Origin: Podarcis vaucheri
Lineage: Eukaryota
Assembly: GCA_965113315.1 (NCBI GenBank)
Contig: OZ220363.1
Reading direction: 5' to 3' (one strand)
DNA: 64,000 bases
A program made the translations under genes and the position numbers. The first letter of the stretch is position 1. The number at the start of each line of letters is the position of its first letter. The notes under the pieces are model-generated. The model searched no databases. It saw nothing but the letters and a program-made list of their open reading frames with translations, and was not told where the DNA came from. Positions 14,048-64,000 of this stretch are shown here, piece by piece.

Positions 14048-14176
14048 TGGATAGCTCAGTTGGTTAGAGCATGGTGCTGATCATGCCAAGGTTGCAGGTT
14101 TGATCCCTGTATGGGGCAGCTGCATATTCCTGCATTGCAGAGGCTTGGACTAGATGATCCTCAGGGTCCCTTCCAA
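14048..14176 (+). mobile_element. tRNA-derived SINE with CR1-like tail
   Basis: A box (TAGCTCAGTTGG) and degenerate B box (GGTTTGATCCC), then the CR1 3'-like TTGGACTAGATGATCCTCAGGGTCCCTTCCAA. Confidence 0.8.
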
Positions 14177-45737: not shown

Positions 45738-46146
45738 TATTTCTCTGATGAAAATAGGGACATCCTATTTAACAACAACAACAATTTTATTATTTATACC
45801 CCGCCAATCTGACTGGGTTGTCCTAGCCATTCTGGGCAGCTTCCAGCATATATAAGAACATAACAAAACATTAAACATTAAATAACCTCCCTATAGAGAG
45901 CTGCCTTCAGATGCCTTCTAAAGGTTGTATAGTTATATTTCCTTGGCTGGTGGGGTCACATAACTCCACACCCTCCAGTATTTCTCTGATGAAAATCGGG
46001 AGGTTCTACCATACCCTCCAATATTAATTTGATTAAAATAGGGACGTCTTAAGGAAAAATGGGACATTCCGGGATCAGATCAGAAACCGGGACAGCTTCT
46101 GTAAATCCAGGACTGCCCCTGGAAAATAGGGACACTTGGAGGGCCT
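45738..46146. mobile_element. Non-autonomous DNA-transposon fragment (AAAATAGGGAC repeats) interleaved with an L2 tail
   Basis: Repeated GATGAAAATAGGGAC; end ...GGGACACTTGGAGGG is the reverse complement of the copy at ~55545-55673. Confidence 0.55.
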
Positions 46147-46299
46147 GATACTTTAAAAAGTGCAAAGTCCATCTAATTTAGACTACGTCTTGTGACATAT
46201 GCACCCGCTTCTGAGCACTGAAAAGTTCCAAGTACATCATTACAGAGCTTTGTTTCCTTTTAGATGAGGAAGCACTGAAGATGTGGGGTGACTGTAATA

Positions 46300-46657
46300 C
46301 AGTGGTGCCTCGCAAGACGAAAAGAATCCGTTCTGTGATTCTCTTCGTCTAGCGGTTTTTCCGTCTTGCGAAGCAAGCCCATTGACGGATTAGCAGATTA
46401 GCGCTATTAGCGCTATTAGCGCTATTAGCTCTATTAGCGGCTTTTAGCGGCTTATCTGCTGATCGGATCAGCTGATAAGTGGCTTAGCGGCTTAGAAGGG
46501 GGGGGAGGGAAAAAACCAGCAGGAACTCGCAAGACATTGTCGTCTTGCAAAGCAAGCCCATAGGAAATTCGTTTTGCGAAGCACCTCCAAAACGGAAAAC
46601 TCTTTCGCCTAGCGAGTTTTCCGTCTTACGAGGCATTCGTCTTGCGGGGCACCACTG
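46300..46657. mobile_element. Tc1/mariner-type MITE (CAGTGGTGCCTCGCAAGACG family) with internal (ATTAGCGCT)n
   Basis: TIR CAGTGGTGCC(T/C)CGCAAGACGAA, TA TSD; related to 61236. Confidence 0.88.
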
Positions 46658-46660
46658 TAT

Positions 46661-46784
46661 TTAGCTAATAGCGCTAATAATGCTAATCCGCTAATACGTC
46701 AATGGGCTTGCTTCGCAAGACGAAAAAACCGCTAGACGAAGAGAATCACAGAACGGATTCTTTTCGTCTTGCGAGGCACCACGG
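46661..46784. mobile_element. Inverted partial copy of the left arm of the preceding MITE
   Basis: Reverse complement of ~46300-46425 (e.g. GAAGAGAATCACAGAACGGATTCTTTTCGTCTTGCGAGGCACCAC). Confidence 0.85.
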
Positions 46785-47564
46785 TATTTGCAAATACATA
46801 AGCAGAGCATAGTGCAGAAAAATATTCTCCTGTGAGCAAACAGCATAGTCATTAATCCTGCAACACGCTTTCCAAGAGAGCAGCTACATTCCCCCAATGA
46901 GAAAGGCACTCCTTGGGTGTTTCAGCTCTAGGAAAGCCACAGCTTTAAATTTCTAAGTGCAAACTTGCTATTTTTCACACATGCACAGACACACACACCG
47001 GAAAGGTACACACTTCCCCAATGTGCTTAGATGCCTGCTTTAGGAATTATGTGATCATATTTGGAGCAGAAGTTGCCTTTTTGGAGCATCAGCTGCAAAC
47101 CTGACCAGCACACTGGTTTCTCTAACTTTATTTATGAATATTTATGAATATATTATATTTATTTATGAATAAATGTAAAAGCATGGGGCGGGGAGCTCAC
47201 TTATTAGATCGCTCCACTGTGAGAGTTGTCCATTTATTCCTAATTCCTGCTTTCTGCCCTTTAACAAGTTATTGATCCATAGGAGGACTTATAATCTTAT
47301 CCCGTGATTGCTGAGTTTATTCCGGAGCCTATTTGAGGGACTTCATTGAGGAAACTTTCTTCATTTTTTTAGAAGACAGGGTATAAAGATATAGAAACCT
47401 GTCCTTATTGTAACTTGTCAACAAGAAGTTATCAAGGTCAGCTTTTCTCTCTTGATAACTTGCATATTGTAAAACAGCAGCTATGAGCTGCATATTTTAA
47501 AAATTATTTGAGCTAAATTAGTTGTCATTTGAATCAGGCTTATTTCTAACTCAGTAATATCCCA

Positions 47565-55790: not shown

Positions 55791-56157
55791 AGAATCATAG
55801 AATCATAGAGTTGGAAGAGACCACAAGGGCCATCGAGTCCAACCCCCTGCCAAGCAGGAAACACCATCAGAGCACTCCTGACATATGGCTGTCAAGCCTC
55901 TGCTTAAAGACCTCCAAAGTAGGAGACTCCACCACACTCCTTGGCAGCAAATTCCACTGTCAAACAGCTCTTACTGTCAGGAAGTTCTTCCTAATGTTTA
56001 GGTGGAATCTTCTTTCTTGTAGTTTGGATCCATTGCTCCGTGTCCGCTTCTCTGGAGCAGCAGAAAACAACCTTTCTCCCTCCTCTATATGACATCCTTT
56101 TATATATTTGAACATGGCTATCATATCACCCCTTAACCTCCTCTTCTCCAGGCTAAA
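55791..56157 (-). mobile_element. CR1 LINE 3' end (young)
   Basis: AGAATCATAGAATCATAGAGTTGGAAG is the reversed (ATTCTATG)n CR1 tail; followed by GTCAGGAAGTTCTTCCTAATGTT typical of the CR1 ORF2 end. Confidence 0.9.
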
Positions 56158-56329
56158 GTCCTGCGTTCTTAAGTCCTGCGTTTAAAGTGCACTTTTTGTC
56201 CTAACAAACACATGGGGAACGATTCGTTGCAGCAGCAGCAGCGGTAACCCCATTATCTTGATTTCCAGAACGGGACAGGCCAGGACTGGAAAAGCGGAAA
56301 AAGTCAGCACCAAGCCCAGGTGAATGAAT

Positions 56330-56785
56330 GGAGCCAGCAGCCGCGGCCAGCGCTTGCGAGCTTCCTTTGTGGCTCCCGCCCCTCGTTCCAAGCCGGAGAG
56401 AGGGCACGTAACAATCCCAGATCCCAGTCTCTCCCTGCACGTCCGGCACTGCCCGGGAGCTTTTTCGTGCGCTGCGTTGGATCCCGCGTGTTCCCAGCGC
56501 GTGTCCTCGAGGGACGGCTGGATGAGGCGGCGAGAGAGAGAGAGGAAGCCAGGAGGGCGGGAAGGAGGGAGGCGCTGGGCGGGGGCGGAGGCGCCGCTCG
56601 CTCCCCGTGGTACGTGTGCACGCTCCCGAGCGGCATGTCCTCGCTCCTCGTATCCGGCGGCGTGTGGCGCGAGCATGGCATTTCCCGCGTGGAGCTCGGG
56701 CCCGGCCAGAAGCGGCATGCCGCCGCCGTGGTGAGGCGATGCCGCCCCGCCGGCCGGGAGCGGGAGCTGGTCTTGCGCGCAAACC
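56330..56785 (+). promoter_or_regulatory. CpG-island promoter / 5' UTR of the upstream PHD exon, with candidate HREs
   Basis: High GC and CpG density; GC boxes (GGGCGG ~56555-56590); RCGTG cores at 56405-56410 (CACGTA), 56438-56442 (CACGT) and 56611-56616 (TACGTG, followed by inverted CACGC at 56619-56623). Confidence 0.7.
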
Positions 56786-57394
56786 ATGGCCTCCTCCGGC
56801 GGGGAAGCGGCCCAGCAGCAGCCCCCGGCGGCCGCCCAGCTCCGCGGAGACTCAGTAGAAAGCATGAGGAGGATTTTCATCCACCACCCGCCCGGGAGCC
56901 GCCAGGAGGGGGGCGGAGAGGAGCAGCCTGCAGGGCCGGCCGCAGGCCCCCTCGGAGGCCTCTGGTGCCCCGCTGCGAGCCCGGCGGAGGCCCCGGGCGT
57001 CGAGGGCGCTTCGCCCTCCGCCGGCTCTCCGCCTGGCAGCAAAGCTCCTCTCCGGGAGCCCCGCAGAGATGCGCAGAGGCTAGTCTTGCGCTACGTGGTG
57101 CCTTGCATGAACGCCTATGGCTTGTGCATAGTCGACCACTTCCTGGGGCACAGGATGGCCGAGAAAATCTTCCAAGAGGTCCTGGCTTTGCACCTGAGTG
57201 ACAAATTCCAGGACGGCGCCCTGGCGAGCCAGAAGGCGGGCGGCGGCCGAGCCATTCGCGGGGACAAGATTTTGTGGGTTGAGGGCAGTGAGCCGGGCTG
57301 TGAAAATATAGGCTACCTCCTGAAAAGAATGGATAAGCTCATCATGTACGCAGATGGCAAGCTGGGGCGCTACAAAATTAGAGGAAGACACAAG
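56786..57394 (+). CDS. PHD2/EGLN1-like first coding exon (203 aa); putative alternative exon 1 of EGLN3
   Basis: Strong Kozak ACCATGG; intact ORF; C-terminal 106 aa (YVVPCMNAYGLCIVDHFLG...FQDGALASQK...IRGDKILWVEGSEPGCENIG...GKLGRYKIRGRHK) is the N-terminal half of the EGLN catalytic domain. Donor AAG|GTTAGT is phase 0 at the conserved EGLN intron-1 position. Confidence 0.85.
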
Positions 57395-57604
57395 GTTAGT
57401 AGCTTGTAAGCCCCGACTGAAGTTCACTCCGGGCTCCTCCGGAGTTTCTGATCTCCCTCTCTTGCCATTTCATGTACTCTTCCGAGTCTTAACCACGCAA
57501 TTCCTGGCCGCTCTGCTACCAGCTGCAACTCGGGCTTGGCATTTGGTCCATCCGCTCAGATCCTAACCCTAGTTCGATCGCTTTGTGAAACAACTTTAAA
57601 CCGT

Positions 57605-57794
57605 CAAAATAAAAAAATTCCTTCCAGTAGCACCTTAAAGACCAACTAAGTTGCACACTTCTTCAGATACACATGCACACAAGTGTGCATGCACACGAAA
57701 GCTCATACCAAGAACTAACTTAGTTGGTCTTTAAGGTGCTACTGGAAGGAATTTTTTTATTTTGACTATGGCAGACCAACACGGCTGTAACTGG
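57605..57794. mobile_element. Penelope-like terminal repeat (rearranged inverted pair) between the two first exons
   Basis: Same family as 9602; 13-bp TSD AACTTTAAACCGT at 57592-57604 and 57795-57807. Confidence 0.8.
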
Positions 57795-58549
57795 AACTTT
57801 AAACCGTGTAGCGTTCACAGCGTGGCAGCCCACGTGGGATTTCCTATATCCACGAATTGGAGAGGTAGTAGCGGGTGATTTTGTATGGCGGGGGGTAACC
57901 TCACTACGCTTAAAGACACGGTTTCCTTTTTTTGTTTTTCCCGCCTTCATCAAAAAGTTCCCTAGAGTTATTAACCAGGATTTGTGAGCTGCAGTTTCAA
58001 AGAGAACAAATTTTCTGAAACACTCGTGCGTGCATATGCATATATATAACCCCGAACATCTTACTTTAACGGCTCTCTCTAACGTTTATACAGTATTGGT
58101 AATTTCTGAAACGATAGTTATCTTGGCAGGCTATGAGAGTGGGCATATTTTCCTAGCTTTTAGGAGAAAAGGAATGAGGTTTAGAATCCAGGTGGTGACA
58201 AGTCAGTGAGTGCTTTTTAAACAAATCATCTGTGTTTCGAGAGGCTTTTGAAAGCCGGGAACTGGTATTCCGCACGCATGATCTTGTTTGCAAAGCGAAT
58301 TCCAGCTCTGCAATATGTTTTGTCAGCAGATGACCAGGTGTGAAAAGGGGGGGAGGATGTCTTGAAGTGGGAGAGAGAGAGAAAGAAAAGAGGGAGATAA
58401 GCACTTGTAACCTCGCTCCCCATCCCTATAGCATTAAGTTGCCAAGAGAAACTCAACTGGCACTTAACGCCCTTATACCCCCCCCCTCCGTTTGTTTACA
58501 TTGGCTTGTAGTATGTGACCGTAGTAGAAGCGTACATGCTGGGGGAGAA

Positions 58550-59422
58550 TTCCTCAATGGCGGAGACCACACCCACTCCGAGTTGTAGGCGGCGCACGAC
58601 GAACCATAAGCCGCGCCTCCTCCAGACACGCGGCTTTTCCTCTCCGCCCTCTCCCCCACGCCTTGATTCCAGCCGTGAACCCTACGCGGGTTGGACGCTT
58701 CCGGCGAAGCCCCGCCCTGCCCCCCTCCTGATTGGCTGCCCTCACGTTCCACAGGGCTGCGGGTAGGCGCGGGGAGAGATTGTCCCCGGGACGGGGCTCC
58801 ACCCACGTGGCGCTCGCCGCAGAAGTAGGAACACATTCTGCACGTAGCAGACGTATTAATCAGAGAGGGGCCATCTGCTGCCTCGGTGAAATTGAAAGGA
58901 GTTTGCAGGACTCGGCACCAAAAAAAATTCAAAAAAAATTAGGGGGAGTGATCACATCAGCAATTGCGGGGTGTTCACACACTGGTCTCCCGGCCTTAAA
59001 GCTGGTAGAAAAGAGCTGCTTCAGCTTCCTTTTCCAGCAACTGCCTCTCTGCCAAGGTGCCGATCCCCCCGCGGTATTGGGTGGAGGTCAGTCCGCGGAA
59101 GGCGTGCAGCCACCGTTCACTTCATTAGCAAGCCTTGTGTCGCCCAGGGGTTGGGAGAACCCGAGAAGGTGGCTGCTGACTGCGCTGAAGACAAAAGTAC
59201 GACTTTAGCCAAACTTTTGGGCACGCCGGTTTCTCTGACTAGCCGGACCCTGATTTGCTCTGCTCTGCTCGCTTCTCCCAAGAGTTAGGCATCGCTGCTG
59301 GCCCGTGTGGCGGATTCAGTGTGTTAGAATCGCCGATAGAAACCAGGTCTCCTGGCGCGCGCTCCGCCGCTTGGCTTGCGGCTCTTGACTTTCTGCTACA
59401 AGGGGCGAAATCAGTCGGGTTC
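58550..59422 (+). promoter_or_regulatory. CpG-island promoter / 5' UTR of canonical EGLN3 exon 1
   Basis: CpG-rich; GC box CCCCGCCC ~58710; inverted CCAAT (ATTGG) at 58731; CACGT at 58743, CACGTG at 58804-58809, CACGTA at 58841-58846. Confidence 0.7.
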
Positions 59423-59428
59423 ATGAAA

Positions 59429-59785
59429 ATGCCACTGGGACATATCATGAGATTAGACCTAGAGAGAATTGCCTTGGACTACATAGTGCCTTGTTTGCAT
59501 GACATTGGTTTTTGCTACCTGGACAATTTTTTGGGCGACTTGGTAGGAGACTGTGTCCTGGAACGTGTGAAGCAGATGCATTATAACGGGGAGCTGCAGG
59601 ATGGTCAGCTAGCCGGCAAGCGCAACGGCATCTCCAAGAGACACTTGAGGGGAGACCAGATAAAGTGGATCGCAGGCACTGAGGAGGGATGCGAGGCCAT
59701 CAACTTTCTCTTGTCACTGATAGACAGACTGGTTATGTACTGTGGAAGTAGACTTGGCAAATACTATGTGAAAGAGAGGTCCAAG
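59429..59785 (+). CDS. EGLN3: Egl nine homolog 3 (PHD3, HIF prolyl hydroxylase 3), coding exon 1 (119 aa); the rest of the gene lies beyond the window
   Basis: MPLGHIMRLDLERIALDYIVPCLHDIGFCYLDNFLG...KRHLRGDQIKWIAGTEEGCEAINFLLSLIDRLVMYCGSRLGKYYVKERSK matches the diagnostic PHD3 N-terminus; consensus donor AAG|GTAAGA. An in-frame ATG lies 2 codons upstream (59423). Confidence 0.97.
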
Positions 59786-61235
59786 GTAAGAAATTCAAAT
59801 GGGGGGAGATAGCTACTAACACTTCTAATGTAATGGGGACTTTTAATTAGGGAGCCATGCTTGAATGTTTGGGTTGTAAGGGGGTTAATATCCTTATTTG
59901 CTTTCATACTGATGCTGGGCTTAATATTTCCATCATAAACTGCAAAACACAAGTAAGCGATACCTGGGATGAGTTTTTTGATCCTCCACCCCAAGTTAAA
60001 ATCCTAAAAAAGTTTATTGTGAATATGCTCCTTTGGACTCAACTGGATTTACTTACTGGTTTAAGAATTTTTCACTTTTTCAGTGCAGCATGTGAATGAC
60101 TATAATTCACACTGGGGCAGCCAACTTGGTTTAAGTGAGATTATAACTGTAACTGGCCCTCTTGTCTCCTCCTAGAAGTGGAAATGCAGGATGTTGCATT
60201 TGTGAGGAATTTGTTTTTTAAAAATATTACTAAGAAGAATTCCAATATAGCATTGATTATACACCTGTAGAAGAGTTTCCTAGAACTACATTGGCAATTC
60301 AAAATGATTTTGAATGGTGCCAAAAGTTTGTATAAGTCCATTGCCTAATTGGATTATCCTTGCTTTCCTGTCACTTTCCACTAAGCTCCAGGTTGGGTTC
60401 TTGTGGTGGTCATATGCTGAGTGCTTGTCAGGCTCCTGAGCAGCTTAGCTTGTCTTTAGAAAGGTAATAAAGTTAATCCCTAATTTATGCACATATGTAC
60501 CAGCAGAGGACACTGCACAGCTGAGTAAATAAACAAAATCCACAGCAATTAATAAATTAATTTATGCTGAAAAGTGACCGAAGTGTGGGCCCATGCATAA
60601 ACTCCTTTTGGTTTGCATTGATCAAACTGATTGCACAGCTTCAACCTTCTGTTAGCAATCAGTTTCATACAACGTGCGCCTTTGCATGTCAGAAGTAAAT
60701 CCTATTGAGCTCAGTGGAATTTCAACTTACTCCCTGGTTAGTGGAGTTAGGATTGCAGCTGTGGAAAGCGAAACATATCTGGAAGTGACAACAAAAATCC
60801 TGATTAATGGCCATGAGAGGACGTTCTGTAACAGTAGTTAGATTGGTTTCCTTCTTCCTTAGTTTCAGACTTCATTGAAATCACCAGATAAATTATTTCA
60901 TTGCTTTTCCTTCCTTCCCTACCACTCAAGAGGTAAAGAAGTAAAATAATGTCATGCATATGTTCAGTTGAACAAAAGCAGTTTTGACAAAAGCCAGCAC
61001 ATTAGCTAGTTTTTGAAAAGTTATTCGGGACTTTCTTCCTCTCTTCTGTGTTGCTTATTATTCCAGCATCCTTCATGGTAATGAATGAATAGTTTTACCA
61101 GAACTCAACTTTAGGTAGTGACTAAGCCTACAGAAGTATATCTGTAACTCTGCTATAGGCTTAATTATTTACGGTGCAATCCAATGCTTGTCAGAAGTAA
61201 GTCTCATTGATTCAAATGAGGCATACTCCCAGGTA

Positions 61236-63635: not shown

Positions 63636-64000
63636 TATGTCCCACGGAATATAGGAAGTGGCCCATCTAGCTCACTATTATTTGACTAACAACAGCTCTC
63701 CAAGATTTCAGGCAGGAGTCTCCCCCAGCACTACCTGAAGATGCAGACATATGCATTAGTTTTCAGTAAGGTTGATGTCAACTTTCCCAGTTGCATTATG
63801 CGTCCGCGTTTTGCATGTCACACAAAGTCACAAAGTCTTAGTAGAAGTAGAAGTGAAGAGGAAATCCCAGTCCGGTTGAAGGGAAGTCCTCTTGGCCTTT
63901 TGAAATCTTGACAAATCAAATTGAGGTGTTTATATAAAACTAGGACTAGCAACTAATCCTTATGGTAAATGTCTGCTACTCCCAAGTATTCAGGCCAAAG

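Follow-up and report, generated by a model that had tools for sequence, protein, structure and literature searches.

The 5′ end of EGLN3, the gene for the prolyl hydroxylase PHD3, lies in a 64,000-nucleotide stretch of DNA from the lizard Podarcis vaucheri (contig OZ220363.1 of assembly GCA_965113315.1), which we refer to as the window. Our analysis indicates, with a probability of about 0.88, that this gene in lacertids has two mutually exclusive first coding exons, and that the upstream one, here called ALT, is joined to the shared exons 2–5 to give a long form of the protein. Two promoters approximately 2.3 kb apart would pick between the ALT and the canonical first exon, with the remaining mRNA in common. 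Use of the canonical exon would yield the textbook short PHD3, and use of ALT a longer protein, approximately 325 residues as modelled in Podarcis muralis. The latter would consist of a disordered N-terminal extension of approximately 94 residues, followed by a slowly evolving paralogous N-terminal half of the catalytic domain (helices α1–3, the first strands, and the β2–β3 finger loop), and finally the part encoded by the shared exons 2–5, which carries the Fe(II) and 2-oxoglutarate (2OG) ligands.

Paralogous first exons that have their own promoters and are spliced to common exons are known from UGT1A and the clustered protocadherins, where the swapped part is likewise substrate-facing. EGLN3 differs from these systems in that it has two alternatives, that half a catalytic domain is swapped, and that the pair predates the gnathostome radiation.

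Results

Two first coding exons with matching boundaries

The ALT exon occupies positions 56786–57394 on the plus strand. According to the list of open reading frames, an ATG-initiated frame spans 56786–57409, and the first 203 codons of this frame, all of them sense codons, constitute the exon, which ends in ...YKIRGRHK. The donor GTTAGT (57395–57400) follows directly after GRHK, and the main ATG at 56786 is found in a strong Kozak context (ACCATGG). Codons 1–94 (56786–57067) encode a Pro/Ala/Gly-rich N-terminal extension that is predicted to be disordered, while codons 95–203 (57068–57394) encode the N-terminal half of the catalytic domain. The canonical first coding exon, also on the plus strand, is located at 59423–59785 and reads MKMPLGHIMRLD...YYVKERSK, followed by the donor GTAAGA at 59786; its ATG is either the one at 59423 or the one at 59429. 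The encoded segment shares 84–95% of its residues with the EGLN3 proteins of reptiles, birds, and mammals (84–87% with those of mammals). Both donors are in phase 0 and follow a homologous Lys, and the two exon products are identical at 44 of 110 aligned residues (40%) with a single gap. The original prediction, which was made from the sequence alone, had described two intact ATG-initiated exons about 2 kb apart with phase-0 donors after the same Lys, and this is confirmed by the open reading frames and the donor letters. Its hand estimate of the identity between the two exons (about 43/107) agrees well with the alignment.

Each exon had also been said to lie in its own CpG island. Both are indeed CpG-rich, but the ratio of observed to expected CpG stays high throughout the four kilobases from 56001 to 60000 (0.85, 0.75, 0.78, and 0.59, compared with 0.1–0.4 in most other kilobases of the window), and the region is a single broad CpG-rich block with two start regions rather than two clearly distinct islands. 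Within this block, the promoter region of ALT (56000–56665, plus strand) has a GC content of 0.64 and an observed/expected CpG ratio of 0.85.

A six-frame search of the 64-kb window for the exon-2 motifs YPGxG, VACYPG, RNPHEV, and WYFD gave no match, and exon 2 of EGLN3 must therefore lie beyond position 64000. The lack of an exon 2 between the two first exons, which had been put forward to show that the upstream unit is not a complete tandem gene, is real, but it is a weaker argument than it seems, since the whole window is without exon-2 motifs.

The ALT exon is transcribed and spliced

Four sequencing runs (X1, X5, X9, and X23) from a relative that is about 1% diverged were mapped on 56300–59422, an interval that excludes the canonical coding exon. 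In the stranded raw RNA-seq run X23, the depth is 2–8 over 56720–57454, with the first reads in the bin 56615–56719. The first mates are all on the minus strand, and the ALT RNA is thus plus-sense. Read depth falls to 0 in the unique intron bins 57455–57559 and 57875–58294. Moreover, contigs from three studies leave the genome at 57395, namely those covering 56830–57395 (X1), 56667–57395 (X5), and 56965–57395 (X9). The X5 contig continues for 1018 letters past this point, and the overhang of the X9 contig reads G, which is shared with position 57395, followed by CAATGGTAGCCTGCTACCCTGGAAA; these letters encode AMVACYPGN, with which EGLN exon 2 begins. Splicing thus takes place at the 57394 donor and leads into an EGLN exon 2, which is the RNA junction that promoter choice at this locus calls for.

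The ALT contigs begin at 56666, 56667, or 56706, which places the approximate ALT 5′ untranslated region (UTR) at 56666–56785. The canonical contigs begin at 58933 (X1) and 58947 (X9) and continue past 59422, giving a canonical 5′ UTR at 58933–59422 preceded by the canonical promoter region at 58600–58932 (all on the plus strand). No joint leads from 57394 into 57395–59422 among the reads mapped. The two first exons thus have separate transcription starts and occur separately in the RNA. The depth over ALT compared to that over the canonical 5′ UTR is 16.5 versus 13.1, 15.6 versus 4.0, and 39.8 versus 11.8, and 2–8 versus 0–1.8 in the raw reads. Although depth is a rough measure, no run shows less depth over ALT than over the canonical 5′ UTR, and the long form amounts to more than a trace.

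The X23 reads show three non-synonymous differences in the ALT domain, at 57095, 57128, and 57245 (V104M, I115V, and G154S), which are absent from the X1 and X5 contigs of the same species label. They could stem from another lineage, an allele, or a paralogous copy.

Gene models join either first exon to the same downstream exons

The domain part of the window ALT exon is 100% identical to the corresponding part of P. muralis ‘prolyl hydroxylase EGLN3 isoform X1’ (P0002, 325 residues), a RefSeq/Gnomon model in which the ALT exon is followed by the ordinary EGLN3 exons. In the N-terminal extension, 6 of 94 residues differ between the two. Comparable models named ‘EGLN3 isoform X1’ are present in RefSeq for dozens of species, so a search of existing annotations for the isoform is positive. 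These models, which include P0002 as well as the zebrafish and ray proteins XP_005169871.1 and XP_072896132.1, describe the same object as that reported here, an ALT exon with the shared exons, although they are automatic predictions without functional description.

In three distant species, the long and short proteins do not differ at any residue between AMVACYPG and the C-terminus: Rhinatrema (P0027 and P0124), Protopterus (P0041 and P0128), and Geotrypetes (P0025 and P0125). Two sets of exons 2–5 that had been separate since the base of the jawed vertebrates would differ, and the identity of the isoforms therefore argues that the exons are shared. The idea that promoter choice joins either first exon to common exons thus finds support in the RNA, in the RefSeq X1 models, and in the three isoform pairs.

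The canonical PHD3 (approximately 239–243 residues) would share with the long form its gene and exons 2–5 with the Fe/2OG ligands, and its first exon has the same phase-0 boundary at Lys. It differs in its exon 1, in lacking the N-terminal extension, in having one more residue in the finger loop, and in its long branch in the exon-1 tree (see below).

Two further kinds of model were observed. In P0020, P0022, and P0023 (turtles), P0040 (Electrophorus), P0073, and P0099, one or the other first exon is joined straight to ...LHGGILRIFPEGKS. Such isoforms skip the exon that bears the HxD iron ligands and would be catalytically dead if real. Furthermore, P. muralis has a second copy of the ALT exon in the model P0004 (‘EGLN3-like’, 221 residues), which is 95% identical in the domain part and located on a 63.5-Mb chromosome, whereas P0002 is on a 137-Mb chromosome. 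P0004 is an exon-only model that runs into the intron, with Gln where the window has TAA after GRHKVSSL, and may represent a segmental duplicate or a pseudogene.

The ALT exon encodes a PHD2-like half domain

A phmmer search of the PDB with ALT codons 95–203 matched human PHD2 with an E-value of 4e-37 and without gaps, and matched PHD1 (4e-31) and a Trichoplax PHD (2e-19) more distantly. A hand count on the printed alignment to PHD2 gives 61 identical residues of 108, close to the earlier estimate of a gapless match at about 60 of 106. Residue n of the window protein corresponds to residue n+94 of PHD2, so that codons 95–203 correspond to PHD2 residues 189–297 and the exon boundary at K203 to PHD2 K297. 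In relation to the PHD2/EGLN1 domain structures (PDB 2G19, 5L9B, and 8Q6D, among others), the ALT half aligns without gaps to residues 190–297 with 56% identity and a loop of equal length. The β2–β3 finger loop corresponds to ALT codons 143–160 and has the PHD2 length and the SQK...IRGDKI pattern, whereas that of the canonical PHD3 is one residue longer. The finger loop sets the selectivity of PHD2 and PHD3 for NODD versus CODD.

The catalytic residues are carried by exons 2–5. In P0002, H219, D221, and H280 together with R289 correspond to the iron ligands H313, D315, and H374 and the 2OG-binding Arg R383 of PHD2, and none of the four varies among 20 isoform X1 proteins. The Pfam domain PF13640 is recognized in the shared part of P0002 with an E-value of 4e-22. 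In an AlphaFold2 model of P0002 built on an alignment of 88 sequences, the predicted local distance difference test score (pLDDT) exceeds 90 over most of residues 93–318, but drops to approximately 60 for the finger loop, and residues 1–90 score below 50. The model superimposes on PHD2 crystal structures with template modelling (TM) scores of 0.93–0.96 at 70% identity, and the chimeric ALT/EGLN3 domain is thus predicted to fold like PHD2.

The 94-residue N-terminal extension is poorly conserved. In an alignment of 20 proteins, what is kept is the start MA[ST][ST], a DSVESMR-IF motif (DSVESMRRIF at ALT codons 22–31 of the window), and a basic KEHRR-like stretch before the domain. No Pfam domain was found in the extension. 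A MYND finger (PF01753), which is present in the EGLN1 matches P0066, P0068, and P0070, was not found in the window exon, in P0002, in a 570-residue ray isoform, or among the precomputed domains of the ALT isoforms.

Distribution across vertebrates

A protein database search, in which all 204 word-sharing candidates were scored, revealed ALT forms among named proteins of cartilaginous fishes, ray-finned fishes, lungfish, caecilians, turtles, and squamates. The identity of the ALT domain to that of the window is 99% in Zootoca, 88–93% in Varanus, snakes, an amphisbaenian, and a cordylid, 85–87% in geckos, 79–81% in turtles, 72–78% in caecilians, and 57–70% in lungfish, paddlefish, bowfin, many teleosts, and chimaera. 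Cluster look-ups additionally name ALT forms in rays (570 residues; one ray model is Hemitrygon akajei XP_072896132.1, P0162), houndshark, zebrafish (XP_005169871.1, P0344), bream, and eel. No ALT form was found in any protein of birds, crocodilians, mammals, frogs, salamanders, or the coelacanth, a search that covered well-represented proteomes, with human sequence excluded, and left the genomes unsearched. This distribution suggests that the exon was lost in these lineages.

The pleurodont iguanians stand apart, with ALT exons in Anolis (P0033 and P0036), Sceloporus (P0028), and Phrynosoma (P0001) that are 64–78% identical to the window. Their divergence exceeds that of snakes (90% identity) and turtles (80%), and Anolis, with a long terminal branch of 0.54, takes a wrong position in the tree. 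The pattern suggests relaxed constraint or adaptive change in this group.

Age and constraint

To place the ALT exon among its relatives, a careful maximum-likelihood tree was calculated from 65 exon-1 segments, with support given as bootstrap/Shimodaira–Hasegawa-like approximate likelihood ratio test (SH-aLRT) values. It contains separate clades for ALT (96/94), canonical EGLN3 exon 1 (100/99), EGLN1 (96/88), and EGLN2 (100/99), with ALT and the canonical exon as sisters (97/86). The order inside the ALT clade largely matches the species tree. The stem leading to the canonical exon is long (0.62) compared to that of ALT (0.20), and the path from lizard to chimaera amounts to 0.58 substitutions per site for ALT versus 0.84 for the canonical exon. 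The ALT exon is therefore at least as constrained as the canonical one. The ends of the exon differ characteristically between the groups: ...I[RT][GW]R[HNS][KS] in ALT, ...ERSK in canonical EGLN3, and ...INGRTK in EGLN1, EGLN2, and the invertebrate sequences. On average, the ALT segment of the window is 53% identical to EGLN1, 50% to EGLN2, and 41% to canonical exon 1.

The label of a ‘PHD2-type’ N-terminal half given in the original prediction is accordingly apt by similarity, but not by descent, since ALT falls outside the EGLN1 clade and lacks the MYND finger. For the same two reasons, an assignment of ALT as an EGLN1 orthologue was ruled out. Furthermore, the C-terminal half of the long form is that of EGLN3. 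The likeness of ALT to PHD2 is best read as retained ancestral sequence.

Other features of the window

Two kinds of promoter motif were noted as pattern matches. A TACGTG is present at 56611–56616, approximately 55 nucleotides before the ALT start region, and the canonical promoter region contains a CACGTG at 58804–58809 and a TACGTGC on the minus strand at 58841, such that TACGTG/CACGTG motifs are found 55–130 nucleotides upstream of both start regions. The shorter RCGTG motif occurs 23 times in the 3.5 kb between 56000 and 59500 compared to 1.1 times per kb window-wide. This density was rejected as a sign of HIF binding, as it follows from the CpG richness, and in such DNA the motifs near the start regions are no sign of HIF control either.

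The ALT 5′ UTR contains upstream ATGs at 56675, 56717, and 56739, one of which begins a reading frame of 39 codons that is out of frame with, and overlaps, the main start, and translational control of ALT by upstream reading frames is possible.

The intron 3′ of the ALT exon harbors, outside the coding structure, a hairpin repeat at 57603–57766 (no strand assigned) with perfectly complementary 50-nucleotide arms separated by 64 nucleotides. Its RNA depth reaches thousands in all four runs, with many unrelated flanks and loose ends, which indicates a high-copy interspersed element, similar to a miniature inverted-repeat transposable element, that is present in many transcripts. There is also a weak joint from 56554 to 58369, which skips 1814 nucleotides and is represented by three X23 reads with opposite mate orientation and without canonical splice ends, as well as a low-depth X5 contig on 58238–58446. 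These may reflect an antisense or spacer transcript, or repeat noise.

Further upstream, a scan with Rfam gave only a weak, partial tRNA-like match at 14052–14110 (RF00005, 32 bits, model positions 8–63), which is probably a fragment of a tRNA-derived short interspersed nuclear element. An isolated kilobase at 46001–47000, approximately 10 kb upstream of the gene, has an observed/expected CpG ratio of 0.86 at an ordinary GC content of 0.45.

Discussion

The picture that emerges is that of a gene with two old, alternative first coding exons. Several observations weigh against it. Exon 2 lies outside the window, and the sharing of exon 2 is thus deduced from gene models and from the agreement of the protein isoforms in other species. 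The individual that supplied the window is not the source of the four runs, which stem from a relative about 1% diverged. Three of these runs are presumed to be RNA, a guess that their intron-free pattern favors. Over short evolutionary range there is no sign of purifying selection, as the window and this relative differ at 0–3 positions in the domain part, all non-synonymous. The read variants in the N-terminal part (eight non-synonymous and six synonymous changes) are a crude count that is uninformative in this respect. Finally, as regards the relationships of ALT, a tree constrained to unite ALT with EGLN1 exceeds the free tree by 1.55 in log-likelihood and is not rejected by the approximately unbiased test (p-value of 0.55).

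The last point bears on where the ALT exon came from. We consider an ancient tandem duplication of EGLN3’s own exon 1, after which the canonical copy diverged fast, to be the most likely origin. It is favored because the two exons are adjacent and have the same orientation and phase, features most simply explained by a local event. Alternatively, ALT could be a captured EGLN1-like first exon, or what remains of a fourth paralogue or of a tandem gene that lost its exons 2–5, which was then co-opted into EGLN3. To this origin we give a substantial chance, though one clearly short of even. It would account for the result of the constrained tree, for the gapless fit of ALT to PHD2 compared to the extra loop residue of the canonical exon, and for the higher identity of ALT to EGLN1 and EGLN2 than to canonical exon 1. 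However, the higher identity to EGLN1 is also expected if the canonical exon simply evolved faster, as its stem length implies. The free tree, as well as a quick tree of 162 rows (support 85), pairs ALT with the canonical exon, and the MYND finger is absent from every ALT isoform, including the 570-residue ray form. Only three alignment columns are informative, two uniting ALT with the canonical exon against EGLN1 with EGLN2 and one for the opposite split. Of the earlier claim of an old duplication under constraint, the age and the constraint are supported, from chimaera and rays to lizards, while EGLN3’s own exon 1 is the likeliest source of the duplication.

Another question is whether the transcript matters. 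It could be that ALT is transcribed without giving rise to a functional product, be it as promoter-upstream or bidirectional noise, as a substrate of nonsense-mediated decay, or as a decaying relic, in which case there would be no distinct enzyme. In favor of this, the 5′ UTR contains upstream ATGs, the domain part differs from that of the close relative at few positions, each of them a non-synonymous change, and the iguanian copies are strongly diverged (64–72% compared to 90% in snakes). Nevertheless, we find this explanation improbable. The reading frame, the MA[ST][ST] start, and the ...IRGRHK end at the donor have been kept from chimaera and rays to lizards, the exon has accumulated fewer substitutions than canonical exon 1 across the same divergence of species, it is covered as deeply as the canonical 5′ UTR or more deeply in four runs, and the chimeric domain is modelled by AlphaFold2 as a high-confidence fold. 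Less probable still is that ALT belongs, as first exon, to a complete tandem EGLN gene of its own, with exons 2–5 outside the window, interleaved with those of EGLN3 or beyond them: a second exon set would escape direct inspection there, and some databases call exon-only models ‘egl nine homolog 1-like’, but these models are read-throughs into the intron (GRHK followed by V...), and the isoforms are identical from AMVACYPG onward in three distant species.

With two alternative first exons as the preferred reading, the long form may act as an active HIF prolyl hydroxylase. The PHD2-length finger loop may shift its substrate preference, the N-terminal extension its interactions, and the separate promoter its regulation, and the long form would then constitute a fourth PHD activity in the vertebrates that keep the ALT exon. 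In its full extent, the proposal is that of a fourth HIF hydroxylase with a function of its own, present in most fishes, caecilians, turtles, and squamates, with a PHD3 core and a PHD2-like loop, different NODD/CODD or non-HIF substrates, a conserved N-terminal motif, and its own promoter, which has been lost from, or has escaped annotation in, mammals, birds, crocodilians, frogs, and salamanders, and which is spared by canonical exon-1 phd3 mutants of zebrafish, so that ‘PHD3’ biology has been partly missed in non-mammalian models. We put this forward tentatively, as a less than even bet.

Full-text searches of the literature returned no description of a long EGLN3 isoform or of a paralogous upstream first exon. 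A 2024 survey of EGLN genes in fish handles EGLN3 as a single gene, and the word ‘isoform’ does not appear in it (PMC11370800). The long isoform is thus apparently known to annotation pipelines, but not to the literature. A related report concerns Megalobrama amblycephala, for which two alternatively spliced PHD3 transcripts have been described (Chen et al. 2016, as cited in PMC8772553). As in the present case, there is more than one EGLN3 transcript, and the species also has an X1 model (P0328). However, according to the summary in PMC8772553, these variants arise by alternative splicing of known exons, unlike a paralogous first exon.

The finding may affect how existing work is interpreted. 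In a published phd3-null zebrafish line, 8 bp are deleted from ‘exon 1’ of the 243-residue form (PMC10724695), a lesion that should leave the reading frame of the long isoform (XP_005169871.1) intact. Likewise, evolutionary studies that use the ‘longest isoform’ of EGLN3 may align non-orthologous first exons. More generally, the three-enzyme picture of oxygen sensing with PHD1, PHD2, and PHD3 is derived from mammals. In most sampled lineages of jawed vertebrates, one gene would instead give two enzymes that differ in the whole substrate-facing front half of the catalytic domain, an arrangement older than the split between sharks and bony vertebrates. The EGLN3 locus would thereby offer a natural domain swap for the study of substrate selectivity in the PHD enzymes.

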